From the IMG/VR virus record IMGVR_UViG_3300025141_000016, positions 233,105 through 297,104 of that record: a stretch of 64,000 bases of DNA; one strand, 5' to 3'. Shown here piece by piece: positions 32,895 to 47,009 of the stretch (its first letter is position 1; each line of letters opens with the position of its first letter). Below the pieces are notes generated by a model. That model had not been told where the DNA came from, did not search any database, and was given only the letters and a program-made list of their open reading frames with translations. A program made the translations under genes and the position numbers.

Positions 32895-33302
32895 ATGTCT
32901 CGACCGTTGATCCCGTGTGCGAAGTGCGCGTCCCTCACTACGGACCTGTACCGGGACCGCGACTTCTCTGGACAGGGCTTTCCGCGTGATGCGGTACTTC
33001 ACTGTCGGTGTTGCGGCTACCGGTTGCATGGGGCGATAGCGATTGCGTACACCGAGCGCGTTTTGAAAGAGAAGGAGAAGGCTGCAAAGGAACTTCGCTT
33101 GGGGCAACGCCGTAAGGCTGCGGAGGAGGCACGGCGCAAGGAGGAGCAGCGTCAGTTGGAGCAGTTGCAGCGATCCTGTGAGTCTCTATGTGCATGGGAA
33201 GGTTGCGAGAAGGAGGCCCGGTCCACATCGAAGTATTGTTCGCGCTCATGCTCCAACAAGAACGCTCGGGCTCGCCACAGGAAGCGGCTTCGTTGTGCGT
33301 GA
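32895..33302 (+). CDS. Zinc-finger protein (CGNR-like C-terminus)
   Basis: CAKC..CRCC; CAWEGC..KYCSRSCSNK..RHRKR. Confidence 0.65.
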   Translation: MSRPLIPCAKCASLTTDLYRDRDFSGQGFPRDAVLHCRCCGYRLHGAIAIAYTERVLKEKEKAAKELRLGQRRKAAEEARRKEEQRQLEQLQRSCESLCAWEGCEKEARSTSKYCSRSCSNKNARARHRKRLRCA

Positions 33303-33305
33303 GGG

Positions 33306-33320
33306 AGGTAATCAGTCTAT
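33306..33320 (+). promoter_or_regulatory. Class I motif
   Basis: AGGTAA-tcagt-CTAT, before 33365. Confidence 0.7.
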
Positions 33321-33364
33321 TGGATGACCTATGGGTGTAGAGGCCCCCATAGGAAGACGCGACG

Positions 33365-33772
33365 ATGACTGATGCCCTGATTTCCCAACTATTCGACTTT
33401 GGCAGTCTCGGGCTGTTTGCTGCGTTCCTTGTCTATCAGCATCTCGGGATGCAGAGGCGGCTCGATGGGCTGACCTCTGGTTTCCAGGCCCAGTTGAAAG
33501 AGATCGAGAAAGCCCATGAGGGTCGTATCGAGATCATGCGTGGTCGATATGATGTGGTGATGGATCGGGTGAGGGCAGAGGGGGCGGCGGCTCTCCAGCA
33601 CTGTATGGCCCAGCGAGATGAACTCATCGCCAAACTCGGGGAGCAGGTTGATGGGGTCGCCAAGAAGATGGATGCCTCGATGTTCAAGCAAGAGGTGGCC
33701 CTCGCAAAGATCGAGGAGGCATTGGACGAGATTCGGCGCGAGCGGGAGCGGCGTTGCTTCAGAGATCGGTAG
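33365..33772 (+). CDS. Holin-like membrane protein (N-terminal TM + coiled coil)
   Basis: FGSLGLFAAFLVY TM segment, then coiled coil; class I promoter. Confidence 0.5.
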   Translation: MTDALISQLFDFGSLGLFAAFLVYQHLGMQRRLDGLTSGFQAQLKEIEKAHEGRIEIMRGRYDVVMDRVRAEGAAALQHCMAQRDELIAKLGEQVDGVAKKMDASMFKQEVALAKIEEALDEIRRERERRCFRDR

Positions 33773-33781
33773 TTCCCCTAT
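33767..33781 (+). promoter_or_regulatory. Class I motif
   Basis: CGGTAG-ttccc-CTAT, before 33819. Confidence 0.75.
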
Positions 33782-33818
33782 GCACCAGAGAGGGTAAGTA
33801 CCCCCGTGGAGATTTCGC

Positions 33819-35057
33819 ATGGCTACCCCTACTGACCGACAACTCCTCATCCGTGTGGCCTCCACTCTCCCTGTGGGGTCAGAAGCACGTCGCGTGATCC
33901 TGGCTGGGTGCGAGAAGCTGAAGGTTCCCGCGATGCGCGAGAACTGCGAGAAGTCCAAAGAGGACGGTGTTCAACCCGGTAAGGGCAAGTCGAAGTCAAA
34001 GTCGAAGGGTGACGACAAGATGCCAGCCGAGTTGCTGGAGAAGTTCAAGGCCAAGAAGAAGGCCAAGACCGCTCGGCTGATGAAGCGGCAAGAGAAGATC
34101 CTTCGCCAGTACCTCGACTCCGCATCGAGTCCAGCGATGGACTACGACGGCCTACCCCCGCAGGTTCAGAGTGCTTTGAGGCGCGTCAAGAACCAAGAAA
34201 CCCTGCACAGTGACGTGGAACGCTGGCTCGGGGACAACGCCCAACGCTCGATGTGGGCTTCCAACCGACCAGCTTTGATTCGCCTCGCTTCCAGTCTTCC
34301 TGCTGGGTCAGATGAGCGTAGGGTCATCCTCGCAAGGATCCAGAAAGAGGCCCGAGGTGGATGGGATGAGGTCATTTCCGGTGACCTCATGCGTGCTCGC
34401 TTCGGTGGTCAGAGGGTGATGATCGAGGAGATGCCGGGGAAACCCGTCAAGCGCAAGGTCCGTCGCATCACATTTTCGACGGAGTGGGTGATGCGTGGTG
34501 GGTGGTTCCGCCCCGACGGCCCTTTCCTGATGAGCAACATCTGGAATGATGCCGGTATCACCAAGAACATGACCTATGACCGAGCAGTGGCGGCGATGAG
34601 AGGGGCTATCGAGGAGGTGGGCACCAAGGCACTGAAAGAGGCAGCCAAACTCTCCAAGAAGTATCCGGGCAACTACATGACCCCTGCCGAGATGCAGGCG
34701 CAGTTGGATAAGGTCAAGTGGCCCAAAAACTTCCTCGGGAACGAGGAAGTTGTGTCGTTCTTGGAGGTCGAGCCGCAAGACTATTCCCCGATTTCTTTCA
34801 AGGGAAAGGACTTCGCGGGAACATCGAGATGGGATGAGTTCACGTTCTACGACGAGGCAGACAAGGACGACTACATGGCCCAGATGGAAGGGATGCGGGC
34901 GTTCTACAAGTCTACGTCGAAGGGTGCCGCCCGTAAGCTGTTCAAGCTGCTGAAGGCTGACCCCGACGTGGTTCGGAACATGGACAACGGGGACTTCCTG
35001 TTGTGGCTCGGCAAGAACAAGGTCAGCCACCGATACGTCCCCACCGTCTGGCGCTGA
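33819..35057 (+). CDS. Tag-A polyprotein (two tags, unknown cargo domains)
   Basis: LIRVASTLPVGSEARRVILAG and LIRLASSLPAGSDERRVILAR; KTAR and KEAR linkers. Confidence 0.75.
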   Translation: MATPTDRQLLIRVASTLPVGSEARRVILAGCEKLKVPAMRENCEKSKEDGVQPGKGKSKSKSKGDDKMPAELLEKFKAKKKAKTARLMKRQEKILRQYLDSASSPAMDYDGLPPQVQSALRRVKNQETLHSDVERWLGDNAQRSMWASNRPALIRLASSLPAGSDERRVILARIQKEARGGWDEVISGDLMRARFGGQRVMIEEMPGKPVKRKVRRITFSTEWVMRGGWFRPDGPFLMSNIWNDAGITKNMTYDRAVAAMRGAIEEVGTKALKEAAKLSKKYPGNYMTPAEMQAQLDKVKWPKNFLGNEEVVSFLEVEPQDYSPISFKGKDFAGTSRWDEFTFYDEADKDDYMAQMEGMRAFYKSTSKGAARKLFKLLKADPDVVRNMDNGDFLLWLGKNKVSHRYVPTVWR

Positions 35058-35061
35058 CAGG

Positions 35062-35088
35062 GGGGTCTGACCCCAGCCCGAATGGGTA
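35062..35088 (+). promoter_or_regulatory. Class II motif
   Basis: GGGGT-N17-GGGTA, before the primase. Confidence 0.7.
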
Positions 35089-35097
35089 GGCCCCTCC

Positions 35098-35820
35098 ATG
35101 AGAGAGTGGTTGACCGAAGCACTGTTGTCCTCTGCCGAGGACACCCCCCAGGAAGCCGAGGGCTATGTCCTCGGTCGTGGCCTGCCGTCCAGGCTGATGG
35201 AGGAGATGCGTGTCGGTCTGTGGCGGTGTCCATCGACGCGGGCTCCAGATGGGGCCTTCGTTGATCGACACGGATCATCGGGTCACCGGGTGGACCACTG
35301 GCTTGCCATCCCCCTCTGGTCCCCTCGGGGTCGAGTTGTCGGTGTGGAGTTCCGCACCTGGGAGGGGGAGAAGAACGTCAGCAAGTACCACCTGCCCGAG
35401 TCGGCTTGGGCACCTGTGTTCGTCGGGTTGACCCCATCACACCTCGACCGCATCTGGGCCGGGGGAGATGTGTGGCTTGTTGAAGGGGTCTTTGACCTTG
35501 CCCTGGCTCATGTGACTCCCGAGCGGGATGCGGTGCTGTCTACCGGAGGGGCGAAGATCACGCCCAGGCAGGTTGCCTTCCTTCAACGGTTCATGGTTCC
35601 AAACGCTATGGTCCATGTGGTTTTCGACATGGATGAGACAGGACAGAAGATGGTCCATGGTTACACTCACCCCGAGTCAGGCCGGGAGGTCTGGGGTGTC
35701 CTTCAACGTCTGGAGAGGGCTCGCGTTCAGTGCCGCCCCGTCCAGTATCGGGGGAAAGACCCCAGCGCGGTTTGGGCAGTGGGGGGAGAGCGACACCTTC
35801 GTTCTGTCTTCGGGTTGTGA
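35098..35820 (+). CDS. DNA primase (TOPRIM domain, no N-terminal Zn finger)
   Basis: AIPL..GRVVG..R, VWLVEGVFD, FDMDETG, KDP. Confidence 0.8.
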   Translation: MREWLTEALLSSAEDTPQEAEGYVLGRGLPSRLMEEMRVGLWRCPSTRAPDGAFVDRHGSSGHRVDHWLAIPLWSPRGRVVGVEFRTWEGEKNVSKYHLPESAWAPVFVGLTPSHLDRIWAGGDVWLVEGVFDLALAHVTPERDAVLSTGGAKITPRQVAFLQRFMVPNAMVHVVFDMDETGQKMVHGYTHPESGREVWGVLQRLERARVQCRPVQYRGKDPSAVWAVGGERHLRSVFGL

Positions 35821-35823
35821 AGG

Positions 35824-35850
35824 GGGGTGCTCCCCACCCCCCGATGGGTA
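35824..35850 (+). promoter_or_regulatory. Class II motif
   Basis: GGGGT-N17-GGGTA, heading the dnaX-nusG-sigma operon. Confidence 0.7.
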
Positions 35851-35887
35851 TGGATAGGTGTTTACCACACTGAAAAGGAGAACCCTC

Positions 35888-36358
35888 ATGCCTGTGGAAA
35901 TCTGGAAAGCGAGTGACGACGTACACACTACCGTTCGTACCCTCGTCGCCAACAACCATCCCGACCTTGCCCTGGTCGTGGACGAGATCGTCGTAGTCTT
36001 CCGTGAAAGGGCCGGGAAGTCAGGGGGTCAGGTCATTCTGGGCTCCAGCAAGAAAGTCCAAGCCCTCGCCAACGCCATCGGCAACACGACCTACAAGTTC
36101 GTGGTGGAGGTGGCTGCCGACCAGTGGGAGAACGAACTCGGCTCCAAGCAGCGCGAGGCGTTGCTTGACCACCTGCTCACCGCCTGCCGGTGCGAGGAAG
36201 ACCCCAAGACGGGCGACATGAAATGCACCGTCGCCAAGCCCGACATTATGGCGTTCCGCGAGAACGTCGAGCGGTACGGGATGTGGTTCCCCCGTGATGA
36301 TCCTGATGAGTCGAGCGCACCCTCGCCTGTCGAGGAAATGTTCGGCTCCGACGAGTAG
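35888..36358 (+). CDS. Phage metallopeptidase-like protein with degenerate HExxH
   Basis: W..L..QREALLDHLLTAC..KPDI..F..VERYG pattern. Confidence 0.6.
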   Translation: MPVEIWKASDDVHTTVRTLVANNHPDLALVVDEIVVVFRERAGKSGGQVILGSSKKVQALANAIGNTTYKFVVEVAADQWENELGSKQREALLDHLLTACRCEEDPKTGDMKCTVAKPDIMAFRENVERYGMWFPRDDPDESSAPSPVEEMFGSDE

Positions 36359-36367
36359 GGGGGAGTC

Positions 36368-36724
36368 ATGTGGGGACTGGATATGATCCGCCATATCAAT
36401 GAGGAAGCCGCTACCAAGGCTCGTGGGGAGGGGGCTGTCCCTTATCGGATGGACTCTCCTGACGAACTGGGGGAGTGGCCTCCCTTCCCGTTCCCGCACA
36501 TCGGCTATGCCTGCGAGGAGGTTGATGAGACGCATGAGCGTCTGGACACCCTCTTTGTGGACTCATCGGGCTTTGGTGGGGAGGAGGAGCCAGCGTTGAC
36601 CCTGCGTGCTTTCAAGGCTCGACTGGTGGCCCTTCATAGGGAGCACGGTTCCCTCTTCCTCGCCATCGAGGAGGTAGGCCAGTTCCAAGTCTATGTCGCT
36701 ATCTGGAAGGCTGATGGCGCTTGA
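36368..36724 (+). CDS. Hypothetical protein
   Basis: ORF with GGAG RBS. Confidence 0.6.
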   Translation: MWGLDMIRHINEEAATKARGEGAVPYRMDSPDELGEWPPFPFPHIGYACEEVDETHERLDTLFVDSSGFGGEEEPALTLRAFKARLVALHREHGSLFLAIEEVGQFQVYVAIWKADGA

Positions 36725-38126
36725 TACCAAGTATCGGCCCCGGACCTATGGGGATGTGCTGGGCCAGGATGCCACCGTGGCTGTCCTTCGCCAGTTCGTG
36801 AAGGAGGGAAGGGGGCTTCACCAGTCCTACGTCTTCTGTGGGCAGCACGGATCGGGGAAGACAACCCTCGGTCGTCTTCTTGCTCGGTCGTTGCTGTGTG
36901 AGGCTCCGGTTGAGGGGGCCTCTTGCGACTCCTGTGGGTCGTGCCGGGTGCTTCTCGATGGGGGCACCCACGAGTGTTTTGAGGAACTGGATGCGGCTAC
37001 GAAGTCGGGGAAGGCAGACCTCGCCCGAATCGTTGAAGACGTGACCTACTCCACCTATTCGGGAAAGCGCAGGATCTACCTTTTCGATGAGTCCCATCGC
37101 CTGTCCAAACAGGCCCTCGACGTGCTCTTGAAGCCGATGGAGGACAACGTGTTGGGGTCAGAGGAAAAGCGGCTCGTGTGCATCTTCTGTACCACCGAGC
37201 CAGCCAAGATGGCGAGCACCATCTTCTCGCGCTGTGCCCCGGCCTTCGTGATCCGCCCCGCACCTCTCCCCGAGATTGTGGAACGGTTGACCCATGTTTG
37301 TGGGCAGGAAGGGATTGAGTACGAAGGGGATGCTCTCACTCTCCTCGTGGAGCAGAGTGAGAGCCATATCCGAGATGCCTTGAAGATGGTCGAGGGGGTT
37401 TCGATGCTCGGGGGCATCACCCGGACTAATGCAGCAGCTTACTTGCATCTGGAGGCGAACGAGGAGGTTCTGGGGCTTCTGGAGGCCCTTGGGTCGGACC
37501 TCAACCGTGTGGTGAGCGTTGCCACCTCACTCTCCGAGAGGATGAGCCCGTCGGGGGCCTATGAGCGAGTAGCGGAAGCAGCGATGCTTGTCTACCGGGT
37601 TTACTTGGGGGTTGCCTCAATCCCTACCAAGTGGGATGGTGGTCGGGTGAAGGCCCTGGCAGAGTCGGGGCCGTCTCTTCTCACCGTCGCTTCCCGTTTT
37701 GCTGCCCCACCCCACCGTCCTACGCGGCAGACCTTGATCCTTGACTCGGTTGCCTCCCATCACCTCTACGGGTCCGATGTGGGGGTTTCTGTCGGAGCCC
37801 AGATCGTTGTATCTGCCCCCGCGCCCCCCGTTGCTGCTCCCCCCACCCCCCCACTTGTTTCGGGGGCTTGCTCGGCACTTTCGGAAGGCTCGTCTCCTGA
37901 CCTTGATCCTGTGGGTAATGTCGGTCATGGATCAGACACGCCAACAGCATCAACAACCGCCAACGGGATATGGGTGGACTCCCGAGCGGTGGGTCATGGC
38001 CCTGTTTCGCGGACTGACAAGTCCCAACCCACATCCGATAAAGAATCTCTCTCGTCACCTGTTTTTCGTGAACTGGTACGTCACCATCTCCGAAGGATGA
38101 TGGGTGACCATGGACGTTCGGGATGA
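36714..38126 (+). CDS. dnaX: DNA polymerase III gamma/tau clamp-loader ATPase
   Basis: KYRP..DVLGQ, GQHGSGKTT, C-x-CxxCxxC, ELDAA, FDESH, CTTE, SRC, RDAL. Confidence 0.93.
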   Translation: MALDTKYRPRTYGDVLGQDATVAVLRQFVKEGRGLHQSYVFCGQHGSGKTTLGRLLARSLLCEAPVEGASCDSCGSCRVLLDGGTHECFEELDAATKSGKADLARIVEDVTYSTYSGKRRIYLFDESHRLSKQALDVLLKPMEDNVLGSEEKRLVCIFCTTEPAKMASTIFSRCAPAFVIRPAPLPEIVERLTHVCGQEGIEYEGDALTLLVEQSESHIRDALKMVEGVSMLGGITRTNAAAYLHLEANEEVLGLLEALGSDLNRVVSVATSLSERMSPSGAYERVAEAAMLVYRVYLGVASIPTKWDGGRVKALAESGPSLLTVASRFAAPPHRPTRQTLILDSVASHHLYGSDVGVSVGAQIVVSAPAPPVAAPPTPPLVSGACSALSEGSSPDLDPVGNVGHGSDTPTASTTANGIWVDSRAVGHGPVSRTDKSQPTSDKESLSSPVFRELVRHHLRRMMGDHGRSG

Positions 38127-38652
38127 AATCACATGGGCAGTTTTGGAACTCTCTCCACACGGAGAGCGAGTAGCCGAGGCGGGTCTGTTGGAGGAGATCC
38201 TTCGTGACTACTCCGACATGCCGGAGGGGCATCCGGTTTTCGTCCCTTATCTCACCCTCACTTACAGTGGAACGCAGTCACTCTTCTCGGTAATGGAGGG
38301 GTACGCCTTCGTGGGTTCTGGGCTTCCAGATCACTCCTACCGAGGTTTACTCAACACCCCTTATGTGCGGGGACTCCTATCGAGGGGAGGGAATGGGCAG
38401 TCGTGGGTTTTGGACACGGTGCCGGACGCATCTGTGCGCGAACTGCGCCAACGGTTGAATGAACTCGTAGCCGTTGAGATACAAGTGGATATGAAAGTTA
38501 CGGTCATTGAGGGCTCTTACTCGGGCCTGGAGGGTAAGGTAGTCAGCGTTGGGCCAAAACATGCGATGGTTTTGGTCGAGCTTCGCTCCCTACGGGCGCT
38601 GAAAAAGATGCCGCGCTTCATCCTTCGCCCCTGGGAAGAACCTAATGAGTAA
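38110..38652 (+). CDS. NusG/RfaH-like transcription elongation factor
   Basis: NGN-like (VFVP..MEGYAFV) plus KOW (VTVIEGSYSGLEGKV). Confidence 0.75.
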   Translation: MDVRDEITWAVLELSPHGERVAEAGLLEEILRDYSDMPEGHPVFVPYLTLTYSGTQSLFSVMEGYAFVGSGLPDHSYRGLLNTPYVRGLLSRGGNGQSWVLDTVPDASVRELRQRLNELVAVEIQVDMKVTVIEGSYSGLEGKVVSVGPKHAMVLVELRSLRALKKMPRFILRPWEEPNE

Positions 38653-39253
38653 CTATTGGTGCAGTCATATCGTTCTGGATCCCTCCGACATGGAGAGGAT
38701 TTTTTCAACCGAGGACACCCTCTCCAACTACCCCAGCATCTCCGAGGAGATGTCGGATGAAAGCAAGGAGGAGTTAGACCAAGTGAAGGGGGTTCTGGAG
38801 CAGATCCCCCCGCGTGAGGCTGACTTCGTGGAGTTGTACTTCTTTCAGAAACTCCGGCAGACCACCATTGCGGAGATGTTCAACATCAGCCAGCCGACGG
38901 TGTGCTACCGACTTCAACGAGCCGCAGCCAGGATCCGCTATCTCATCGACATGCCGACTTACAACGTCTGGCTGATGGAGCAGGATCTCCGAGGGGTGCT
39001 CACTGATCCCCGAGACATTGAGATCATGTTGGGGATGGTTGAGACAACCTGTCAGTCGGAAGTGGCGAAGCGGATGGGGGTGACACAGGGTTTTGTGCGG
39101 CACCGCTTCTTCCGCACTATCGACCGCCTGAAGAAGATGAGCGGCATGGATACCTATGTGCAGGTGTACGAACATGTGGCCGGGAACCTCAACATCCTCA
39201 AAGAGACACAGCGATCTCAATGGTCCGAGCCGGTGATCTACGTCGTGAACTGA
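38645..39253 (+). CDS. Sigma-70 region 4-like double-HTH protein
   Basis: IPPREADFVELYF..QTTIAEMFNISQPTV..RLQRA; second HTH QSEVAKRMGVTQGFV. Confidence 0.7.
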   Translation: MSNYWCSHIVLDPSDMERIFSTEDTLSNYPSISEEMSDESKEELDQVKGVLEQIPPREADFVELYFFQKLRQTTIAEMFNISQPTVCYRLQRAAARIRYLIDMPTYNVWLMEQDLRGVLTDPRDIEIMLGMVETTCQSEVAKRMGVTQGFVRHRFFRTIDRLKKMSGMDTYVQVYEHVAGNLNILKETQRSQWSEPVIYVVN

Positions 39254-39259
39254 TAGGGT

Positions 39260-39274
39260 CGGTAGTGCGTCTAT
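39260..39274 (+). promoter_or_regulatory. Class I motif
   Basis: CGGTAG-tgcgt-CTAT, before 39310. Confidence 0.75.
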
Positions 39275-39309
39275 CGCGAGACTTTGGTTGAGTCTTGGAG
39301 GCGCTCCCC

Positions 39310-39630
39310 ATGAAAGACCATAAGCAACTATCCGTCCGTCGGGTTGTCATGGCAAAGCGAGTTGCGACAAAGTGGCTCGCGGAACGTGCTGTGCCCGAGT
39401 ATCGCCTGCGCGTCTACCATGGCTTCGGGCGTGAGTCCCGCAACCTTCCAGGGTTGCTCCGCTCTTTCCGCGACGGAAAGGTGAAGATTGTGACCGCCAC
39501 AAGCATCCCTGACCTTGGAATCAAGCCGGGGTTCGATCATATCGACGTATGGTCCAAGGATCGCGTAGCCCTCCAAGACCTTGATGTAGCCTTGCAAAAG
39601 CTGGGCTGCGAAACAACAGGGGTGTGGTGA
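39310..39630 (+). CDS. Tag-B hypothetical protein
   Basis: MAKRVATKWL; class I motif upstream. Confidence 0.65.
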   Translation: MKDHKQLSVRRVVMAKRVATKWLAERAVPEYRLRVYHGFGRESRNLPGLLRSFRDGKVKIVTATSIPDLGIKPGFDHIDVWSKDRVALQDLDVALQKLGCETTGVW

Positions 39631-40058
39631 TGGCCGCCTCCCTCGCCCAATCGGAGTTCATTTACCGGTCTGGCACCTCGCCGGACATCTACACGTTTAC
39701 GATTGCCGTGAACTCCCAGGGCATCATCAGTGTGCAGGACATTCAAGACCCCTACGGATTCGTCCTGTCCCCTTACACCCAGATCCCGCAGAGCGTGACG
39801 ACCGACATTTCTTCTGCGATGACAACCGTGGAGACAATCTTGGCACTCACATCCGCCGTCAACGGCACCCTTACATTCACCGCATCCACTCACGAGGATG
39901 TGACCTTCGCAGAAGCGTTCTCCGACACCAACTACCGTGTCCAGATCACTGGCGACATTTTTGCCCCCTTCCGTATCACCAACAAGACCACGCTGGGATT
40001 CACCGTCCAAGCGGGGGCTACCGTCACCGGCTCGGTCGGGTACGACGTATTCGCGTAG
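39630..40058 (+). CDS. Probable virion protein (fibre/lectin-type C-terminal domain)
   Basis: VTFAEAFSDTNYRV..NKTTLGFTV pattern. Confidence 0.55.
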   Translation: MAASLAQSEFIYRSGTSPDIYTFTIAVNSQGIISVQDIQDPYGFVLSPYTQIPQSVTTDISSAMTTVETILALTSAVNGTLTFTASTHEDVTFAEAFSDTNYRVQITGDIFAPFRITNKTTLGFTVQAGATVTGSVGYDVFA

Positions 40059-40060
40059 CC

Positions 40061-40075
40061 CGGTAGCTCCTCTAT
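40061..40075 (+). promoter_or_regulatory. Class I motif
   Basis: CGGTAG-ctcct-CTAT, before 40107. Confidence 0.75.
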
Positions 40076-40106
40076 GGAGGGGGACTGGGCGACAGGAGAT
40101 TTCACC

Positions 40107-41819
40107 ATGGCTCTACTACCTATTGAACTTGCTTCCCGCACCGCCTTTGGTGAGAAGATGCAGTCGGCTACGGAGCGTGAGTACAACGCCGCCCTCGGTA
40201 ATGCCCCTCGTGCTCGTAAGGAACACATCGAGGGGGGTCCGCGCACGATGGATGTGGAGTGGAAGGACAGGGGTACTCTCGTAGCCAAGAAGACCATCCT
40301 CTATACGAGGGGCAAGGTCAGCCAGGAACTCTACATGGTCAACCCCGAATACTTGCCGGGTGGGTCGATGGCCCGACGGGCCAAGTTCCCCGAGGGGAAG
40401 AAGATGACCGTCGAGGAAGTAGCGGCTGTCGTTGGACCCGAGTTCAAGGAAATGCACGACAATCCTCCCGATTCCGTCAAGAAGATGCGGAAGGAGATGG
40501 AGGAAGCCATGGAGGCTGACCTCCTTCCGGTCGAGCGGGCATCCACACCGGGCTCGCCCTGCGGGATGAGATCAGCAGGAAGCGCCTCGGCCCCCAAGAA
40601 GTTGGAGATGCTGTCCAAGTCGAAGGCACTTGATGGATTCAAGTCCTTCATCAAGAAAGAGCGCATGAAGGCCACCTCCCCGAAAGAGATGGCTGCGGCA
40701 CTCCAGGCTTACTTTGAGTCGTTGGGGGTGTCGGACGACGACGCTGCCAAGGCTGTCGGAGGCTACTCACGCGGGGATCTCGCAGACGTGATGGGGATGG
40801 CGAAGGCCGCTTCCCAAGATGATCTTCTGCCCATCGAGCGGTACGCCTGTGGGGGCAACTGCTCCTGTGGGGGCAACTGTGAAGGGCGGTGTCAGACTGT
40901 CGGATCTCCCCCGGTTGAAAAGGCGGCGGCCTCTTGGTTCGACATGTTCTTCAAGGAGAAGAACATCCCGTCGAAGGTGTTTGAGGTCACCGACCGGCAG
41001 GGGGTCACACACAGTATCCCCAACGAGGTGGTGATCGAAGCCATCAAACAGACCCGTGGCAGCGAGAAGGCGAAGATCGAAGAAACCCTCCGCATGATCG
41101 ACTTCAAGAACGGGGACGTGAACCATTACCTCGCCCATCTGGCGAAGGGGCTGGCCGAGCAGTACAGCGGTGCTCTCCGGTTCGCTTCCGAGCAGGAAGC
41201 CGAAAAGTTGCAGGCCGAGGCCGAAGCCAACGAACAGCAAGCCGAGGCTGATCGAGCCAAGGCACAGGCAGCCCAGATGAGGGAAGGTCGGACTCGACTG
41301 ACCGGGAAGCAGAAACTCCCCGAGGAGTTGAAGAAGCACCAGTTCACCGAGGAAGACAACCCGAACCCCAAGGGCAACGATAAGGACGGCGACGGCGAGA
41401 CTAACGAGAAGAAGCCCTTTGGGGAGGAATCCAAGAAGAAGTCCTCTGGTCGGCTGGCTCTCCAGCGCAAGTGGCCCTGGTCAGTTGCGGGCTCCCTCGA
41501 TGAGTTCAACGATACGCTCGTGAAGATGGCTTTCGTTCCCGACACCCCGGATGGCGTGTTGGAGTGGGAGCAGCCTCGGGCCAAGCAGGCGGGCCGCCCG
41601 CTGCATCTGATTGCCCGTGAGATCAAATCGGACTGGGGTTCCAAGGTCAACTACGCGGCCAAGCCTTACCTCGATGCGATGCTCTCCCTGAACCGCATGA
41701 GCGATATGTACGGGCACGACAGCGCCGACATGATCGTGCGGTACTTCCTCACCAACGCCCGTTCCTGGCGGGGGCCGGTTGCCAAGGCGATCAAGGCCGA
41801 ACTGAAGCGGATGCTCTGA
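40107..41819 (+). CDS. Multi-module polyprotein with LLP[IV]E repeats
   Basis: Short modules separated by RTA/ERAS/KAAS/RFAS/KQAG; start ATG 40107 after AGGAG. Confidence 0.7.
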   Translation: MALLPIELASRTAFGEKMQSATEREYNAALGNAPRARKEHIEGGPRTMDVEWKDRGTLVAKKTILYTRGKVSQELYMVNPEYLPGGSMARRAKFPEGKKMTVEEVAAVVGPEFKEMHDNPPDSVKKMRKEMEEAMEADLLPVERASTPGSPCGMRSAGSASAPKKLEMLSKSKALDGFKSFIKKERMKATSPKEMAAALQAYFESLGVSDDDAAKAVGGYSRGDLADVMGMAKAASQDDLLPIERYACGGNCSCGGNCEGRCQTVGSPPVEKAAASWFDMFFKEKNIPSKVFEVTDRQGVTHSIPNEVVIEAIKQTRGSEKAKIEETLRMIDFKNGDVNHYLAHLAKGLAEQYSGALRFASEQEAEKLQAEAEANEQQAEADRAKAQAAQMREGRTRLTGKQKLPEELKKHQFTEEDNPNPKGNDKDGDGETNEKKPFGEESKKKSSGRLALQRKWPWSVAGSLDEFNDTLVKMAFVPDTPDGVLEWEQPRAKQAGRPLHLIAREIKSDWGSKVNYAAKPYLDAMLSLNRMSDMYGHDSADMIVRYFLTNARSWRGPVAKAIKAELKRML

Positions 41820-42244
41820 TGACCTACCGTTATTCGTGAAGCGAGGGAGAGGAGCGGTCGCTCCCCCATGAACATCCCCATCCTCCGGGCTTTGACGAGG
41901 AAGACATTGTGGTTGACGAAGAACTGAAAAAGGAAGCCTCCCAAGATCGCCGGATCCTCATCCGTCTCGCCTCCACTCTCCCTGCGGGAGATGGGATGCG
42001 CCGAGCCATCCTGGCTGGGCTCCGACGGAGAGCCGCCAAGGAACCTTGGAAGCACTGGGGGAAGACGCAAAAGGAGATGCTTGGGATAGCCAAGGCCGAG
42101 ATGAAGCGGCTCAATGTCAGGAGCCCAGATGATCTCCGCAAGGCGCGAAAGAAGCATAAGCCCAGTCTCCCGTCCGATGGGTCCAGCGGTCAATATGACG
42201 CTTGGACCGAAACGCTCGCACAGGTCTTGGAGATGGAGGAATGA
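41819..42244 (+). pseudogene. Tag-A gene interrupted by an in-frame TGA at codon 7 (or starting at GTG 41909)
   Basis: TGATG-coupled ATG 41819 is in frame with ORF 41909..42244; single TGA at 41837-41839. Confidence 0.5.
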
Positions 42245-43386
42245 ACCAGCACGAACGAGACAAGAAAGCGTACCTCACCGCGACCCCGATGCAGCGGGAC
42301 GTTGTGCGGCGGCTCTTGACCGACGTGCTTGCCTGTCTCCGTGCCCAATACCTCTCCTACCAGACGAGTCATTGGCAGGTCGTGGGGGGATCGTTCTACG
42401 GAAACCATCTGCTCTTTGATCGGCTGTATCAGTCGGTGCAGGAGCAGGTAGATCAGTTGGCCGAGAAGATCGCCGGATACCTCGGCGGGGATGCCCTTGA
42501 CCTCAACCGTCAAGTGGAGGCCATCTACAACTTTACCCTGGATTGGGGTCGGATCTCTTGCCACCACAAGCGCGGGATTCGTTCGGAGGAGGATCTTCAA
42601 GAAGCAATCAGGGTCGCCTACGAGGGGATCAAGGGTGCCAGGGCTATGACCTTGGGCCTCGATGACTGGCTCATGGCGACTGCGAACTCCCACGAGGAGA
42701 ACACCTACCTGCTTCAACAGACCCTCACGGAACCCCTCACCCAAAAGCAGGCAGGGGATCACCCGATGGTGTCCCATAAAGAGGCCCAGAAGATCGCCAA
42801 AGACCTACTGTCTCGTATCGAGGCCGTGGGGTACTTGGAAGCCTCCATCGCTGCGAAGAAGATGCGAGTGGGAGGGTTTGAGTTCGGGGATCATCGGAGC
42901 GCGATGAAGACCCTAAAGTTTCACGCGAAGGGCACCCTTCCTTTTGGGGTTGAGTCGGCTGCCGAACCACTCCACTGGATCGCCCAGGACGAACTGCAAG
43001 ATTATCAGCGGGTGTTGCGTGTGGCGGAAGGCGCGGCTCGCAAGAAGCGGAAGCGGGGGTCGGGCGCACCGACCGCCGAGGATGCCTTCTACGATGACCC
43101 CGAAAAGAAGGAAGTGCTGGAGTTCTCGCAGTCGAACGCCATCAGCAACAATCCCGAGATTGCCGAGAAAGCGTCGGAACAAGACAACATGGACGTGTCG
43201 GAAGCCAAGGCCGTAGCGGAAGCCGACGAGGCACCCCCTACCCCTGACGAGATCAAGGATGAGCCCGGTGGGGCAGCGTTCTCCACCCTCAACCGGTACG
43301 TCATTCAGACCGAAGTGCCGGGGGAAAAGAAAGTGGTCCAGATGAACAAGGACCGCATGGCACGGTGGTCCGAGGAGTTGCTCTGA
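42241..43386 (+). CDS. Dps/ferritin-like domain fused to further modules
   Basis: HWQVVGGSFYGNHLLFDRLY..DQLAEK Dps motif; KQAG linker. Confidence 0.8.
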   Translation: MNQHERDKKAYLTATPMQRDVVRRLLTDVLACLRAQYLSYQTSHWQVVGGSFYGNHLLFDRLYQSVQEQVDQLAEKIAGYLGGDALDLNRQVEAIYNFTLDWGRISCHHKRGIRSEEDLQEAIRVAYEGIKGARAMTLGLDDWLMATANSHEENTYLLQQTLTEPLTQKQAGDHPMVSHKEAQKIAKDLLSRIEAVGYLEASIAAKKMRVGGFEFGDHRSAMKTLKFHAKGTLPFGVESAAEPLHWIAQDELQDYQRVLRVAEGAARKKRKRGSGAPTAEDAFYDDPEKKEVLEFSQSNAISNNPEIAEKASEQDNMDVSEAKAVAEADEAPPTPDEIKDEPGGAAFSTLNRYVIQTEVPGEKKVVQMNKDRMARWSEELL

Positions 43387-43401
43387 CGGTAGGCCGCCTA
43401 T
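43387..43401 (+). promoter_or_regulatory. Class I motif
   Basis: CGGTAG-gccgc-CTAT, before 43448. Confidence 0.75.
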
Positions 43402-43447
43402 GAGCCAACCCCGGTAGGGTATCCTGACCCCTCCCGTCGGAGGACGC

Positions 43448-44677
43448 TTGTACGCAAATCTTACCGAGGCTTTGAAACGCCGTATGATCCAAGAGATCAG
43501 GTACTTGTGGTCGAAAGACCCGAAGTACCGGGACTCCTTGGTGCCTAACATCCAGGGGCGGTTCTCATTTCGGGAGCGCCCCCAGGAAGCCATCATCCTG
43601 AAAAGCCAGAGTGCGAGCCCCTTTCAACTGGCGGCAGATCACTTTCAGGGCACCATCATCGCGTACTGCTTCCTGACCAAAGTGTATGGGCAGAATGGAA
43701 CGAGCATCGAGTGGGTGCGTGAGAACGGTGCTGCGATCCGTGCCAATAACGGGGTCTTCCCGTCTCCCCCTGGGGTCTACTACATCGAGGTCCGCGAAGA
43801 GGTCATCACCTATCGGGGCGAGCAGACGGAAAGGCTTGTCTTCTATGTGGACCCGTTGCTGGATGTGATTGACGAGACGGCGACGATGCTTGGCCCTCGT
43901 CTATATGAGGTCGGCGCAGGGGCTTTCCACCCCGGAAGCCTTCAAGTCTACGAGATGCCGGGAAACATTCTCTTGTATGAGGGGGTCAACTACACGGCGG
44001 ATGCCACCACAGGGCAAATCACTTTGGCGGCCCCCCTCCCTTCCAACACGTCAATGTCGGTGGATTACCGCTACGCCGGGACCAGCACTGGCCCGTTCCC
44101 CCTCCCCGAGAACGGCGCTGATGTGGATGCTATCCCCGGAGTGGTTCTCGCCTTTGGGCGCAGGGCCTATGACGGGGACATTATGGCGGTGGTTGTCACG
44201 GAACGACGGGAAGATGTGGCCAAGGAGTTCGGCGGCAGGTGGGAGATGAGCATGGACATGGACATTATGGCCCGTGACGTGTACGCCCAAGGGGAGATCA
44301 CTGACCGCACCCTCATGTACCTCCACACGGAGGCACGGGAGAGGCTTTCCACCGAGGGAATCGAGATCACGTCCGTCAGCATGGGTGGTGAGGCCGAAGA
44401 AATCTACGACGAGAATGGCGACGATTACTTCTACACGGCTTCCCTATCGTTGAGCGTTATGACTGACTGGGCCATCCACGTTCCGCTCGGGAGGACCGTG
44501 ATGCGCGTGATCCCCGCCACTGTCGGACAGGAGAAGATGGCGGCAGGCTTGGACGACGCACAACTGATCGAGATGGGGTCACCTACGCGCCTCATCGCCA
44601 CAGACAACTTGGGCCTCGTGTCGATCTCGGACCCGTGGTTCCGTGATCGCACCCGCAACTACGAGGTCATTCGGTAG
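43448..44677 (+). CDS. Probable neck / tail-completion protein
   Basis: Class I promoter; DATTGQITL..VDYRY beta module also seen in the sheath. Confidence 0.5.
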   Translation: MYANLTEALKRRMIQEIRYLWSKDPKYRDSLVPNIQGRFSFRERPQEAIILKSQSASPFQLAADHFQGTIIAYCFLTKVYGQNGTSIEWVRENGAAIRANNGVFPSPPGVYYIEVREEVITYRGEQTERLVFYVDPLLDVIDETATMLGPRLYEVGAGAFHPGSLQVYEMPGNILLYEGVNYTADATTGQITLAAPLPSNTSMSVDYRYAGTSTGPFPLPENGADVDAIPGVVLAFGRRAYDGDIMAVVVTERREDVAKEFGGRWEMSMDMDIMARDVYAQGEITDRTLMYLHTEARERLSTEGIEITSVSMGGEAEEIYDENGDDYFYTASLSLSVMTDWAIHVPLGRTVMRVIPATVGQEKMAAGLDDAQLIEMGSPTRLIATDNLGLVSISDPWFRDRTRNYEVIR

Positions 44678-44686
44678 CAATCCTAT
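44672..44686 (+). promoter_or_regulatory. Class I motif
   Basis: CGGTAG-caatc-CTAT, before 44719. Confidence 0.75.
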
Positions 44687-44718
44687 GCGGAAGCCTCGAT
44701 AAAAGAAGAGAGAACCAG

Positions 44719-45543
44719 ATGCCATCTACTATCCGAAAAGGGTCCAGAGGGGCCGACGTAACGACTTGCCAAGAGAGCCTGACGAAGCACGGCTTTGACT
44801 GTGCCGCCGACGGAATCTTCGGGTCAGGGACGGAAGCCAAGGTCAAGGCGTTCCAGTCAGCCAACGGGTTGGTTTCAGATGGGATTGTGGGGCAAGCCAC
44901 CTGGGGCAAGTTGCTCTCCGATGACCCCGCGAACGCAGGAGTGGCGGCTCCGAGCCCAGTACCTCCTGTGATTCGGCAAGCCCAAGAGTTGGGCTACAAG
45001 ACGTGGGGTGATCCCTGGCGGCTCTTTCTCTTTGGGGTTCGTGCCCCGAACCGAAGTGCCAATACCTACGACGACATGTTGGGTTGCGCCTACGTCAATG
45101 ACGATGGGCTGTGGGAGGCCCATTATTGGCCCGGAACGACGGACCCAGGCACCTACTACTTGGTCAACCCGATGAACTCGGCTGGCTGCGCCGTGCTCGT
45201 GGCGGGGCAGTACCTCGACACTTGGAAGATCGATATGCACGGGGGCAAATACTTGGCTTTGTGCCAAAGGGCAGGCGAGGTGTCTGTCTATCGGGATGAT
45301 TCGGGCGACGACAAGTTGGACCTTGACCCCAGCACTATCGCGACGGGCTACTTTGGGATCAACCTCCATGCCAGCACCCGCACCCCTGACGGGGTTTCCA
45401 AGTACGTCAACAAATACAGCGCCGGATGCCAAGTCCATGCTTCGGCGGATGGATTCGCCAAGATGATGGAGTTGGCAAACGCCCAAAAGGACAAGACGGG
45501 CCGCGACACCTTCAGTTACACCCTCCTCGATCAGTGGTGGTAG
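44719..45543 (+). CDS. Endolysin-like: peptidoglycan-binding domain + L,D-transpeptidase-like domain
   Basis: PG_binding_1 (DGIFG..T..VKAFQ..GL..DGIVG..TW); GINLH..SAGCQV. Confidence 0.85.
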   Translation: MPSTIRKGSRGADVTTCQESLTKHGFDCAADGIFGSGTEAKVKAFQSANGLVSDGIVGQATWGKLLSDDPANAGVAAPSPVPPVIRQAQELGYKTWGDPWRLFLFGVRAPNRSANTYDDMLGCAYVNDDGLWEAHYWPGTTDPGTYYLVNPMNSAGCAVLVAGQYLDTWKIDMHGGKYLALCQRAGEVSVYRDDSGDDKLDLDPSTIATGYFGINLHASTRTPDGVSKYVNKYSAGCQVHASADGFAKMMELANAQKDKTGRDTFSYTLLDQWW

Positions 45544-45545
45544 AG

Positions 45546-45866
45546 ATGGACCTTCCCCTCACCACGAGGGTCGCGTTGCGGCATCAGGTCGTTCGCGATC
45601 TCCCCGTGAGTAAGGGGAAGAAGCCTCATTATGTGAGGTTGAACGTCAACATAGACCTCCCTGGCAGAGATCCTTACTTGCAGAAGATTCAGGGACTCGC
45701 TGCTCGCCAGACGAGCACCATCCCCATCATCAAGCGGGTTTCTCCCGTCACGGTCACTCTGGACCTCCCCATCGCGTTGGAGGAACGACGTGGAGTGGTT
45801 GATGCGATCCAGAAGCTACCCTTCGTGAAGGGGGTGCTCATTACGACTGGTCCACCGATTCGGTGA
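45546..45866 (+). CDS. Small tag-B-like hypothetical protein
   Basis: MDLPLTTRVALRH start immediately after the lysin stop. Confidence 0.55.
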   Translation: MDLPLTTRVALRHQVVRDLPVSKGKKPHYVRLNVNIDLPGRDPYLQKIQGLAARQTSTIPIIKRVSPVTVTLDLPIALEERRGVVDAIQKLPFVKGVLITTGPPIR

Positions 45867-46086
45867 CCTCGGCTTCCTCACCCTTGTCTTTAGGGAGGGT
45901 GCAGTGCCCGCACTCGATGAAGTGCATCGCGGTTCTTCCGAACCAGCCTTGTAGGCTCCAGGCCATGCCATTGTCGATCAAGGTCTGCCATGCAGCGAAG
46001 TAGGCGGCTTCCTTTTCTTCGTCGGTGTCGCCAGGGGGTACTTGCTCGCCCTCGCAGATGAGGACGGTATTGAGGAGAGCGGACAT
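45841..46086 (-). CDS. Small phage hypothetical protein
   Basis: WQTLIDNGMAWSLQGWFGRTA motif; RBS and class II motif upstream. Confidence 0.65.
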   Translation of the reverse strand: MSALLNTVLICEGEQVPPGDTDEEKEAAYFAAWQTLIDNGMAWSLQGWFGRTAMHFIECGHCTLPKDKGEEAEVTESVDQS

Positions 46087-46121
46087 AGGATGCTCCGTGA
46101 GGGGGTGTTCGGGGTATCTAT

Positions 46122-46148
46122 TACCGGAAGGTCTTGAAATCGTACCCC
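46122..46148 (-). promoter_or_regulatory. Class II motif
   Basis: GGGGT-N17-CGGTA, before 46086. Confidence 0.65.
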
Positions 46149-46160
46149 CTTGGGATGTCT

Positions 46161-46619
46161 ATGCCGATCTATGAGTACACCTGCCTGTCCTGTGGGGACC
46201 GCTTTGAGCATTTGTTTCGGCGCATGGTGGAAGACTCCGACACGCACCCGTGCCCCGAGTGCGGAGGGGAGGGAAAGAAGCGGGTGTCGGCCACCAACTT
46301 TGCCTTCGCCCATCCTCAAAGCCAGTTGAGAGGGGCTGCTCCCCCCAACACGGGCACCTCCGATGACTGGAACTACGACAAAGCAATCGGGCGGGATGCA
46401 GAAGCCCGTTGGGGGAAGATCCACGAGAACCGAGCCAAGAAAGCCGAGATCGTCCGCAATGAGGCCAAGAAAGGTCGTGGGATCACCATGGACCATCTCG
46501 TGAAAGAGCGAGATGGGGGATACCGCGTGGTCGAGGAAGGTGAGCGCAAGGCCATCAACCAACACCGGCAGGCGGCATTCGACATAGCCAACGCGACCAA
46601 GAAGAAGTCTGATGAGTGA
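46161..46619 (+). CDS. FmdB-family zinc-ribbon protein
   Basis: MPIYEYTCLSCG..CPECG. Confidence 0.85.
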   Translation: MPIYEYTCLSCGDRFEHLFRRMVEDSDTHPCPECGGEGKKRVSATNFAFAHPQSQLRGAAPPNTGTSDDWNYDKAIGRDAEARWGKIHENRAKKAEIVRNEAKKGRGITMDHLVKERDGGYRVVEEGERKAINQHRQAAFDIANATKKKSDE

Positions 46620-46623
46620 GGGC

Positions 46624-46638
46624 CGGTAAGTCTCCTAT
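46624..46638 (+). promoter_or_regulatory. Class I motif
   Basis: CGGTAA-gtctc-CTAT, before 46680. Confidence 0.75.
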
Positions 46639-46679
46639 CGGGAGGTTACGGGGAGAAACCCTTTTCGGAGGCAAAGACC

Positions 46680-47000
46680 ATGACTGAACCTACTCGCCGG
46701 ATGCTGATCCGATTTGCGTCCACCCTTCCTGTGGGATCAGACGAACGTCGGACCATCCTCGCTGGACTGGACAAGCAGGGTTCCGTGGAGTCCTTTGAGA
46801 AGGAACTCGCCATACAGTTACGTTTGCATACGGGCTTGGGTCCAAAGGATCAGATGGGCCTGAAGGGTCGCACCGTGTGGCTTGCCGATGGAAAGGGTGA
46901 GGTACTGATCTACGATACGACTGCCCGTGGGACGGTGCTCAACTACAAGGGCAAGGAATACAAGTCGGTAAGGGACTTGATGAAGTCCCTTTCTCGGTAG
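46680..47000 (+). CDS. Small tag-A protein
   Basis: LIRFASTLPVGSDERRTILAGL, then KQGS. Confidence 0.75.
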   Translation: MTEPTRRMLIRFASTLPVGSDERRTILAGLDKQGSVESFEKELAIQLRLHTGLGPKDQMGLKGRTVWLADGKGEVLIYDTTARGTVLNYKGKEYKSVRDLMKSLSR

Positions 47001-47009
47001 GCCGCCTAT
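46995..47009 (+). promoter_or_regulatory. Class I motif
   Basis: CGGTAG-gccgc-CTAT, before the sheath gene at 47117. Confidence 0.75.

Follow-up and report, generated by a model that had tools for sequence, protein, structure and literature searches.

A NusG-like gene coupled to a gene for a sigma-like protein without region 2 beside a promoter-like motif in a clade of huge phages

A huge bacteriophage carries a coupled pair of genes, one for a NusG-type transcription elongation factor and one for a sigma-like protein that retains the promoter "-35" reading part but lacks region 2, and in this phage and most of its relatives a conserved promoter-like DNA motif lies directly after the pair. 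This arrangement suggests an undescribed way of retargeting the host RNA polymerase. The pair came to our attention through an original prediction, made from sequence alone, that a NusG-like protein and a sigma-like protein with two tandem helix-turn-helix (HTH) domains lie at a switch from replication to late genes. We analyzed a window of 64,000 nucleotides, positions 233,105 to 297,104 of IMG/VR record IMGVR_UViG_3300025141_000016, which forms the end of that 297-kb record; unless noted, coordinates are those of the window. The observation itself was confirmed: both open reading frames and the motif are as described. The interpretation placed on it was supported only in part, as set out below.

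The NusG-like ORF (38110-38652, + strand) encodes 180 aa from the ATG at 38110, where relatives also begin, or 182 aa from a GTG at 38104. Its start overlaps the end of a dnaX-like clamp-loader gene (36693-38126, +; DNA_pol3_delta2, 6.9e-22; phrog_5846, 2.2e-48), which is its conserved upstream neighbour. With the single sequence, Pfam hits fell below threshold (KOW, E 0.0023, 18.1 bits against a cut-off of 22.3; NusG, E 0.035, 15 against 22.2 bits), as did NCBIfam hits to nusG (1.6e-5, 24.8 against 135.7 bits) and UpxY (2.6e-5, 24.2 against 100 bits); PHROG gave phrog_6386, 'transcription antiterminator', at 8.7e-5. However, a 16-member profile matched full-length B. subtilis NusG (8ehq_G, query 7-155, E 8.7e-5) and the Spt5 KOW domain (E 1.7e-9), and an AF2 model (pLDDT 77.5) had NusG, RfaH and Spt5 as its top Foldseek hits (E 2.4e-6 to 1e-3). 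Thus, the protein has both the N-terminal NGN and the C-terminal KOW domain of the NusG/Spt5 family. The model places beta strands at residues 131-157 rather than the autoinhibited alpha-helical KOW of RfaH, although a model cannot exclude fold switching.

The sigma-like ORF (38645-39253, +) overlaps the NusG-like ORF by 8 nt and encodes a 202-aa sigma70-family protein with a conserved acidic N-terminal/linker segment, region 4, a second HTH domain and a conserved hydrophobic C-terminal tail. More than 1100 relatives were found, nearly all of about 202 aa. Region 4 (4.1 and the 4.2 HTH; residues 36-105, codons 38750-38959) is well supported: Sigma70_r4 scores 54.9 bits against a cut-off of 24.1 (E 6.1e-15), r4_2 scores 38.9 against 25.7, a profile search matched SigF region 4 (8jzt, E 2.6e-6), and structural alignment with VIA-align gave Z 9-10 to many sigma region-4 structures. 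The recognition helix, SQPTVCYRLQRA, is nearly invariant. In contrast, no Sigma70_r2 hit was found in this protein, the only weak region 2 hit in the genome lying in another gene, and TIGR02937, at 64.1 bits and above its cut-off, matches over profile positions 90-162 of 165 only.

The original prediction described both HTHs as region-4-type. The second domain (residues 106-182, codons 38960-39190; HTH at about residues 122-165) is confidently modelled (pLDDT 85-93), and its helix (T/S)QGxVRHRF is nearly invariant, but it resembles region 4 only weakly. A partial match to r4 profile positions 23-50 scored 21.2-21.7 bits (E 2e-4 at 21.2 bits), below the cut-off, and structural alignment gave Z 5.9 to the C-terminal domain of a phage sigma (9m7y_F) and Z 6.2 to a LysR HTH (5y2v; Z 5.9-6.2 overall). 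Aligning the two halves revealed no internal duplication. A Foldseek search with the whole model returned no hit at E <= 1e-3, only region-4 pieces, and an atlas look-up of the C-terminal half gave scores of at most 0.88, leads only, mostly to the same viral family and to small Planctomycetota region-4 proteins. The protein is also not a lambda Q-type antiterminator by these criteria, as PF06530 scored 13.6 bits against a cut-off of 26 (E 0.068) and phrog_79 (8.7e-5) covers only the shared HTH region.

If the two proteins work together, then their genes should remain paired in related phages, a check that had been proposed with the original prediction. Among 80 related viral loci (GC 36-67%, sigma-like identity 44-100%), the NusG-like ORF was directly upstream of the sigma-like ORF in 77 by an automatic criterion; of the three others, L080 and L142 also had it on re-examination, and L081 gave the same result row as L080, so that all 80 loci carry the pair, which is a signature of the clade. 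The same order holds in three more distant metagenomic contigs and in LR745208.1, and the wider order Toprim-metallopeptidase-dnaX-NusG-sigma is kept in relatives. A search for near-identical DNA among GenBank phages gave no match. Complex prediction gave weak support for direct binding, with a score of 0.60 against 0.01 for the best of three controls. That mark was reached by 58 of 80 solved complexes and 2 of 110 mismatched pairs, but at 0.60 or under it was reached by only 7 of the 80 solved complexes and by both mismatches that passed, a band in which passes are more often wrong than right without a strong prior. Runs agreed in >=85% of contacts and partner pLDDT was >=80; as we used our own alignments, these counts hold only roughly.

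The motif CGGTAG-N5-CTAT, called class I, follows the sigma-like gene at 39260-39274 (+), 35 nt before the next start codon. The match is exact, and the window has 17 matches at <=1 mismatch against 1.2 expected, a number reached by 0 of 100 shuffles. At 39286-39292 (+), 11 nt after CTAT, lies GGTTGAG, a one-mismatch version of a downstream GGTAGrG element and, by inference, possibly a -10-like element; GGTA lies at offset 11-12 in 16 of 41 class I sites. The motif is followed by a conserved 106-aa gene (39310-39630, +), syntenic in all compared relatives and without a Pfam or PHROG family hit, and by a conserved gene of 142-144 aa (39624-40058, +), 76-82% identical in near relatives and likewise without an assigned function. 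A second class I motif (40061-40075, +) is conserved in position in four of the related loci (L004-L007).

We next asked how the motif is distributed in the whole record. There are 25 exact sites and 54 sites at <=1 mismatch, of which 41 lie at most 120 nt, and typically 25-50 nt, upstream of a same-strand start; 24 of the 25 exact sites are on the + strand. Motifs sit back to back in a 110-nt divergent gap (record positions 226989, -, and 226999, +) and in a 300-nt divergent gap (window 15522), which argues that they start transcription. Thus, in this genome the motif has a promoter-like distribution. Searches of 33000-47500 for sigma70-consensus promoters and intrinsic terminators found both at or below chance.

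The original prediction placed the pair at the end of a class II-driven dnaX operon. GGGGGT-N17-18-GGTA motifs, probably the class II intended, do precede the Toprim gene (35060-35089, +) and the metallopeptidase gene (35822-35851, +), but a class I motif (33767-33781, +) lies ahead of orf412 and the Toprim-dnaX-NusG-sigma gene string, so the operon is not purely class II-driven. The prediction also held that a long late-gene block follows. The downstream + strand block holds an endolysin-like gene and a gene with a tail-sheath-like domain, but most of its genes have no recognizable function; class I also precedes non-structural genes such as a helicase and a ParB-like gene, and of 19 class I-driven genes scanned most had no PHROG hit. 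The label 'late' therefore rests on a few structural or lysis genes. Finally, the suggestion that the NusG paralogue antiterminates through U-less hairpins has no support: hairpins are not enriched upstream of class I sites (mean -11.3 against -10.7/-11.2 kcal/mol), and terminator-like sites do not exceed chance.

Across the clade, the site after the sigma-like gene is conserved in a more general form. CG.T-N7-YTAT lies within 70 nt after the sigma-like stop codon in 54 of 65 distinct loci, against a shuffled mean of 0.42 and maximum of 3. Of these 54 syntenic sites, 27 have GTAG 12-13 nt downstream and 19 have GGTAG, against 0.86 expected. A matrix built only from distant relatives recovers the sites of this genome (61 hits against 13 in the control, and 29 against 2 when the -10-like part is required), while both recognition helices are nearly invariant. 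Genome-wide use of the motif is, however, lineage-specific. It forms a class only in near relatives (sigma-like identity >=~77%; 16, 22 and 8 exact sites in the three genomes G001-G003). Exact and relaxed patterns were not enriched in LR745208.1 (16 against 34 in the control at <=1 mismatch; matrix, 43 against 51) or in the genome G004, and a de novo gapped-motif search there found no class I analogue. The motif is also rare, at 5 sites, in a 92%-complete 618-kb relative, although the recognition helices are unchanged both there and in LR745208.1. Variation in the helices (Q91 to A/K/Y, C87 to H/S, F150 to K/L) showed no clean covariation with motif variants and was confounded by phylogeny.

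Such observations could also be explained if the sigma-like protein is an ordinary two-HTH regulator, acting as an autoregulator or as a local activator or repressor of the downstream operon of the 106-aa and 144-aa genes, with the spread of the motif in this lineage a secondary expansion and the adjacency to the NusG gene reflecting co-expression only. In distant relatives the motif is indeed conserved mainly at the one syntenic site; outside it, distant loci (L063-L069 left out) show only 26 matrix hits against 7 in the control. We consider this reading unlikely, as the similarity is specifically to the sigma linker and region 4, the genes are paired in 80 of 80 loci, and there is weak predicted binding to the NusG-like protein.

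A stronger rival arises from a complete sigma encoded elsewhere. A 306-aa protein (record positions 107568-108488, - strand) belongs to a family of about 590 members on large phage contigs, with a homologue in LR745208.1; its profile aligns to sigma-H 3mzy (query 145-300, E 9.7e-5), Sigma70_r2 is found in 17 of 23 members, and its gene is preceded by a GGGGGT-N17-18-GGTA motif. This sigma may read class I promoters with its own regions 2 and 4. In that case the 202-aa protein would be an accessory that binds the beta flap or a sigma, as a gp33-like co-activator or an appropriation/anti-sigma-type factor, and the NusG-like protein a general processivity or anti-Rho factor for long phage operons. 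Jumbo phages without their own RNAP combine sigma factors with gp33-type HTH co-activators (PMC7824862). Against this, the invariant, canonical 4.2-type recognition helix suggests that the 202-aa protein does read DNA, the conserved motif lies next to the pair in 54 of 65 lineages, and Pfam and PHROG scans of the protein listed no gp33 or AsiA family. We regard this alternative as possible but less likely than the model below.

We also considered whether the motif is primarily an RfaH/ops-type loading site. The hexamer CGGTAG, in this reading always on the coding (non-template) strand, equals positions 3-8 of the E. coli ops element GGCGGTAGCGTG, which the NGN domain of RfaH reads as a small hairpin, with a C3:G8 pair and G5/T6 read-out (PMC5995543). 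The NusG paralogue would be recruited there to elongating polymerase and make it termination-resistant, with the sigma-like protein helping loading. The motif is strand-specific and lies in short gaps between co-directional genes, the paralogue is encoded next to a copy, and GGTAG recurs as the downstream element. However, a hexamer match noticed after the fact is weak evidence. Across the clade the positions equivalent to G5 and G8 vary (G/T/A), so neither the ops-like hairpin nor G5 is conserved; back-to-back motifs in divergent gaps leave no room for separate upstream promoters; and neither hairpins nor terminators are enriched for it to act on. We consider this reading unlikely.

Collectively, our data are most consistent with a model, which we hold only tentatively, in which the two genes form a conserved two-protein transcription module of a clade of huge phages that use the host's multisubunit RNA polymerase. 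No RNAP beta or beta' genes were found in the 297-kb record (PF00562, PF00623), although the record is only about 67% complete. In this view, the NusG-like protein should dock on the beta' clamp helices, as all NusG/Spt5 proteins do, and the 202-aa protein, a sigma70-family fragment, should dock its region 4 on the beta flap and read duplex DNA in the -35 region. The two genes are translationally coupled, the proteins being made together through overlapping stop and start codons, and the proteins probably bind each other. Their most likely target is the promoter type CG.T(A/T)n-N5-YTAT-N12-GTAG, in this phage CGGTAG-N5-CTAT. The two HTHs would read the two upstream half-sites at about -40 to -26, whose spacing of one helical turn would suit tandem HTHs; the GTAG-type -10-like element would be handled by a region-2-bearing sigma, the phage's own 306-aa sigma or the host's; and the NusG-like partner would stay with the polymerase as a processivity factor. 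What the analysis establishes is the domain identities, the obligate pairing, the conserved motif beside the pair and its promoter-like distribution in this genome. Contacts with RNAP, any effect on elongation, reading of DNA by the sigma-like protein, heterodimer formation and timing are inferred from sequence and models alone, and beyond co-location and co-conservation nothing ties this protein to the motif; that it reads the motif, as originally proposed, is plausible but unproven.

A bolder reading is not excluded, though we consider it unlikely: the pair may be a two-subunit surrogate sigma in which NGN takes the place of sigma region 2. NGN would occupy the beta' clamp helices, the same site that region 2 uses, and read the single-stranded, ops-core-like GGTAG -10 element of the non-template strand by base flipping, as RfaH reads ops. 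The partner would supply the linker, region 4 on the beta flap and a second HTH to read CG.T-N7-YTAT upstream. After escape the NGN-KOW subunit would simply stay on as the elongation factor, such that one module would program both initiation and antitermination.

NusG/Spt5 is the only transcription factor family shared by all cellular life, and sigma region 2 and the NGN domain compete for the same polymerase site. A phage clade that always encodes a NusG paralogue fused in expression to a sigma fragment lacking exactly region 2 thus raises the question of whether an elongation-factor fold can be used for promoter-specific initiation, or for hand-over from initiation to elongation. Even on the conservative reading, our analysis yields a new, very widespread family of putative region-4-only specificity factors for huge phages with a predicted target promoter, three separable promoter-like classes for an uncultivated 300-440-kb phage, and a marker gene pair for this clade.

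The module recalls several known systems. Like the specialised NusG paralogues RfaH, UpxY, LoaP and ActX of bacteria and mobile elements, the NusG-like protein has NGN and KOW domains and is encoded next to operons it may serve, and one half of the nearby motif equals the ops core; it differs in being phage-encoded, in its pairing with a sigma-region-4 protein, in scores far below the curated family cut-offs and in a KOW domain modelled with beta strands. The sigma-like protein shares with ECF and group 3-4 sigma70-family factors, such as SigF, FliA, SigE and the phage 'positive control sigma-like factor' family PRK06930, a linker and region 4.1/4.2 with the canonical 'S..TV..R..RA...LR' recognition helix. 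Lacking region 2, however, it cannot on its own bind the clamp helices, read a -10 element or melt DNA, and it carries an extra C-terminal HTH domain and conserved N- and C-terminal tails. In the phage T4 late-transcription set of gp55 (region-2-like), gp33 (flap-binding HTH) and the sliding clamp, and in the 'minimal sigma' and gp33 of group 2 jumbo phages (PMC7824862), sigma functions are likewise spread over small separate phage proteins that retarget host RNAP, and here too the gene sits in a replication module beside a clamp loader. We detected no homology to gp33, for which no family appeared in the Pfam or PHROG lists, or to gp55, and no clamp gene with PF02768, and the partner is a NusG-family protein rather than a region-2-like one. 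gp33 is not known to read DNA, whereas this protein keeps a canonical DNA-reading helix. In the two-subunit sigma SigO-RsoA of Bacillus subtilis, a region-4-bearing polypeptide also works with a separately encoded neighbour that supplies the missing function, but there the partner supplies region 2; here the neighbour is an NGN-KOW protein and the only region-2 protein found is the complete sigma encoded 160 kb away. Finally, in sigma appropriation by T4 AsiA/MotA and by phiEco32 gp79/gp36, phage factors replace or remodel region-4/-35 recognition so that a new upstream element is read while a -10-like element is kept (PMC12276001). Similarly, all three motif classes in this phage share a GTA-containing -10-like element but differ upstream, yet there is no homology to AsiA, MotA or gp79, and the factor is itself a region-4 homologue.

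The window spans positions 233105-297104 of G000:C1, our designation for the 297,104-bp IMG/VR virus record, and forms its right end. As CheckV rates this record 67% complete, the source is a huge phage of roughly 0.4 Mb, with a GC content of about 60%. Over window positions 60001-64000, at the end of the record, GC content falls from about 0.59 to 0.50-0.53, GC skew turns negative, and the genes switch to the minus strand. A search of GenBank phages returned no near-identical sequence, and the closest named record is LR745208.1, an unannotated 485-kb ‘uncultured phage’. Pfam models for the RNAP beta and beta' cores found nothing in the record. Thus, the phage most likely relies on the host polymerase, although the incompleteness of the record must be borne in mind. 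Several weak pointers suggest Planctomycetota hosts: a NusG-like relative is deposited under a Planctomycetaceae MAG, region 4 of the sigma-like protein hits the Planctomycetaceae-specific sigma subfamily TIGR02984, and atlas neighbors include small Planctomycetota region-4 proteins.

The dnaX-like clamp-loader gene (36693-38126) is overlapped at its end by a 180/182-aa ORF (38110 or 38104 to 38652), whose stop is in turn overlapped by 8 nt by the start of a 202-aa ORF (38645-39253). In LR745208.1, the dnaX homolog (L002:3541-5427, L002 being the locus in that record) is 628 aa instead of 477, and carries an insert of about 150 aa inside the ATPase domain that looks like an intein. To identify the first ORF of the pair, we began with single-sequence Pfam searches, which gave only sub-threshold hits. 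However, a profile of 16 relatives aligns to full-length bacterial NusG and to Spt5 KOW domains, and an AF2 model (pLDDT 77.5) retrieves NusG, RfaH and Spt5 as its best Foldseek matches, identifying this ORF as a NusG/Spt5-family protein. NCBIfam models did not distinguish which NusG subtype it resembles.

The second ORF encodes a sigma70-family fragment. Residues about 18-98 match the linker and region 4 of ECF/group-3 sigmas above curated cut-offs, a family profile hits SigF region 4, and residues 36-105 superpose on many region-4 structures at Z 9-10, while searches of the protein found no region 2. Residues about 106-182 form a second, confidently modeled helical HTH domain, which matches the second half of the r4 profile just below threshold and resembles, in structure, a phage sigma’s C-terminal domain and LysR-type HTHs at Z about 6. 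The two halves are not detectably duplicates. The original prediction described two tandem region-4-type HTHs and no region 2; this is right for the first HTH and for the absence of region 2, but only weakly supported for the type of the second HTH. The protein also has a conserved acidic N-terminal segment within residues 1-35 (W5, P13, D15, E17, R18, F20, E23, D24) and a conserved hydrophobic C-terminal tail at residues 190-202 (W193, then E-P-V-I-Y-x-V), which AF2 pairs as short strands at low confidence. The tail recalls clamp-binding peptides, and the gene sits beside the clamp loader, but our searches found no clamp gene.

We next asked whether the two genes are paired in other phages. 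The sigma-like protein has more than 1100 relatives, nearly all 200-210 aa long, on metagenomic contigs of up to 278 kb, and their recognition helices are almost invariant. The NusG-like protein evolves faster, with 40-52% identity where the sigma-like protein keeps 72-81%. A profile scan of IMG/VR returned 80 loci on contigs of up to 619 kb, with GC 36-67% and sigma-like identity 44-100%. By an automatic adjacency rule, a NusG-like ORF lies directly upstream of the sigma-like ORF in 77 of them; the two exceptions that we re-examined, loci L080 and L142, also have it, and locus L081 gave the same result row as L080. Three more distant metagenomic contigs and LR745208.1 show the same order: Toprim, metallopeptidase, dnaX, NusG-like, sigma-like, a gene of about 100 aa and a gene of 142 aa. 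A complex prediction for the two proteins gave weak support for direct binding, with a score of 0.60 against 0.01 for the best of three controls. That mark was reached by 58 of 80 solved complexes and 2 of 110 mismatched pairs, but at 0.60 or under it was reached by only 7 of the 80 solved complexes and by both mismatches that passed. Runs agree in >=85% of contacts and partner pLDDT is >=80, though, as we used our own alignments, these counts hold only roughly.

The sequence CGGTAG-N5-CTAT, which the original prediction called class I, occurs as an exact copy at 39260-39274. The window has 17 matches at <=1 mismatch against 1.2 expected, and the whole record has 25 exact matches, 24 of them on the + strand, and 54 at <=1 mismatch. 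Of those 54, 41 lie at most 120 nt, typically 25-50 nt, upstream of a same-strand start codon. Half of these carry GGTA-type sequence within 6-13 nt after CTAT, mostly at 11-12 nt (20 of 41, against 5.9% at random positions). Two motifs sit back to back in a 110-nt gap between divergent genes, and another sits in a 300-nt divergent gap, which is the behavior of a promoter and not of a signal that needs upstream transcription. If GTA is placed at about -13 to -11, we infer that the bipartite element would span about -40 to -26, with its halves one helical turn apart.

Genes behind the motif include an endolysin-like protein, a baseplate-like protein, and an 1829-aa protein (window 47117-52606) whose last 350 residues or so match a tail-sheath PHROG (2e-24) and which is preceded by a class I motif 107 nt upstream. 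However, they also include a helicase and a ParB-like protein, most are of unknown function, and one copy of the motif (33767) heads the gene string that contains the pair itself. The proposal that the motif marks late genes is therefore only partly supported. Proteins encoded near class I motifs also share a repeated peptide of about 25 aa of the form LIRLASxLPxGxxxRRxILA, found in orf412 (window 33819-35057, two copies) and orf111 (window 41909-42244), which cross-matches between loci.

De novo k-mer enrichment found two further motif classes. The first is a very strongly conserved 35-bp promoter-like element, AGGGGGGTTCAACTC-N7-TATCTCCGTATAgG, often behind an A/T-rich tract, which occurs at 23 sites of G000:C1 (at 37-39 kb, 60 kb, 94-119 kb, 137 kb and 177-211 kb), all outside the window, and is probably the early promoter class. 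LR745208.1 has a different one, CGATTTCaCTAAAAAgT-N8-cGTGCCGATAGGGT, at 38 sites. The second, GGGGGT-N17-18-(C/G)GGTA, occurs at about 25 sites and is probably the class II of the original prediction. In the window, it lies at 19460, 22229, 23584, 26291, 35060 and 35822 on the + strand, the last two ahead of the Toprim and metallopeptidase genes, and at 46149 and 60578 on the - strand. These copies are 9-77 nt before start codons, and some leave almost no leader or Shine-Dalgarno sequence (for example 35060-35089, then ATG at 35098). All three classes share a GTA-containing downstream element and differ upstream, a pattern that would fit one -10 reader combined with several upstream readers, although this is an inference. 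LR745208.1 additionally has a G(T/G/A)GTAA(C/G) motif at 57 sites within 80 nt upstream of start codons, most often 13-16 nt before them and often without a Shine-Dalgarno sequence, possibly a non-canonical translation-initiation or -10-like signal.

To test whether the class I motif is conserved beyond this genome, we examined the sequence directly after the sigma-like stop codon. CG.T-N7-YTAT is present there in 54 of 65 non-identical loci (shuffled mean 0.42, maximum 3). GTAG lies exactly 12-13 nt after YTAT in 27 of these, and GGTAG in 19 against 0.86 expected. A matrix built only from distant relatives recovers the class I sites of this genome, with 61 hits against 13 in the control, and 29 against 2 when the downstream element is required. 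Thus, class I is the local form of an old, syntenic element, whose conserved positions parallel the near-invariance of both recognition helices. Several observations nevertheless argue against a simple link between one protein and one motif: the element is a genome-wide class only in near relatives, is not enriched in LR745208.1, and occurs only five times in a 92%-complete 618-kb relative, and helix variants do not track motif variants cleanly.

The record also encodes a possible alternative reader of these sites. A 306-aa ORF at G000:C1:107568-108488 on the minus strand, outside the window (L029:472-1389:- in our locus numbering), is a complete but very divergent sigma factor with an N-terminal extension of about 140 aa. 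Its family profile aligns to sigma-H from region 2 through region 4, and 17 of 23 members hit Sigma70_r2. The family has about 590 members on large phage contigs, with a homolog in LR745208.1. This sigma could read class I or the GGGGGT class, which would leave the 202-aa protein as a co-factor.

The original prediction further proposed that the NusG paralog could antiterminate at U-less hairpins. However, predicted hairpin stability in the 45 nt upstream of class I sites equals that of controls, and terminator-like sites do not exceed chance, so this proposal has no support. A general processivity or anti-Rho role remains the default expectation from the family (PMC7819879).

Collectively, these data confirm the predicted observation and show it to be larger than first described: an obligate, clade-wide NusG-like/sigma-region-4 gene pair beside a conserved promoter-like element. 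The accompanying interpretation is partly supported. While the pair and its element are shown by the sequence analysis, the mechanism is inferred, including the redirection of host RNAP to CG.T-N7-YTAT promoters, the reading of these by the two HTHs, and the action of the NusG paralog as a bound partner. We found no description of this pair in full-text literature searches. A comparative survey of jumbo phages mentions minimal sigmas and gp33 but not NusG (PMC7824862), and the huge-phage paper mentions sigma70 and AsiA only (PMC7162821).

A region-2-less sigma that is always paired with an NGN protein invites the idea that NGN substitutes for region 2. We regard this as unlikely on present evidence, given the clade-wide variability of the G5 and G8 equivalents in the upstream half of the element and the lack of any biochemical data. 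The idea draws on a comparison with RfaH, whose NGN domain reads the ops element. CGGTAG equals positions 3-8 of ops12, GGCGGTAGCGTG, the stretch that this domain reads in the non-template strand, with a C3:G8 pair and contacts to G5 and T6 (PMC5995543), and GGTAG is also the commonest form of the downstream -10-like element described here. NGN and sigma region 2 use the same polymerase site, and both flip bases of the non-template strand (PMC7819879; PMC5995543).
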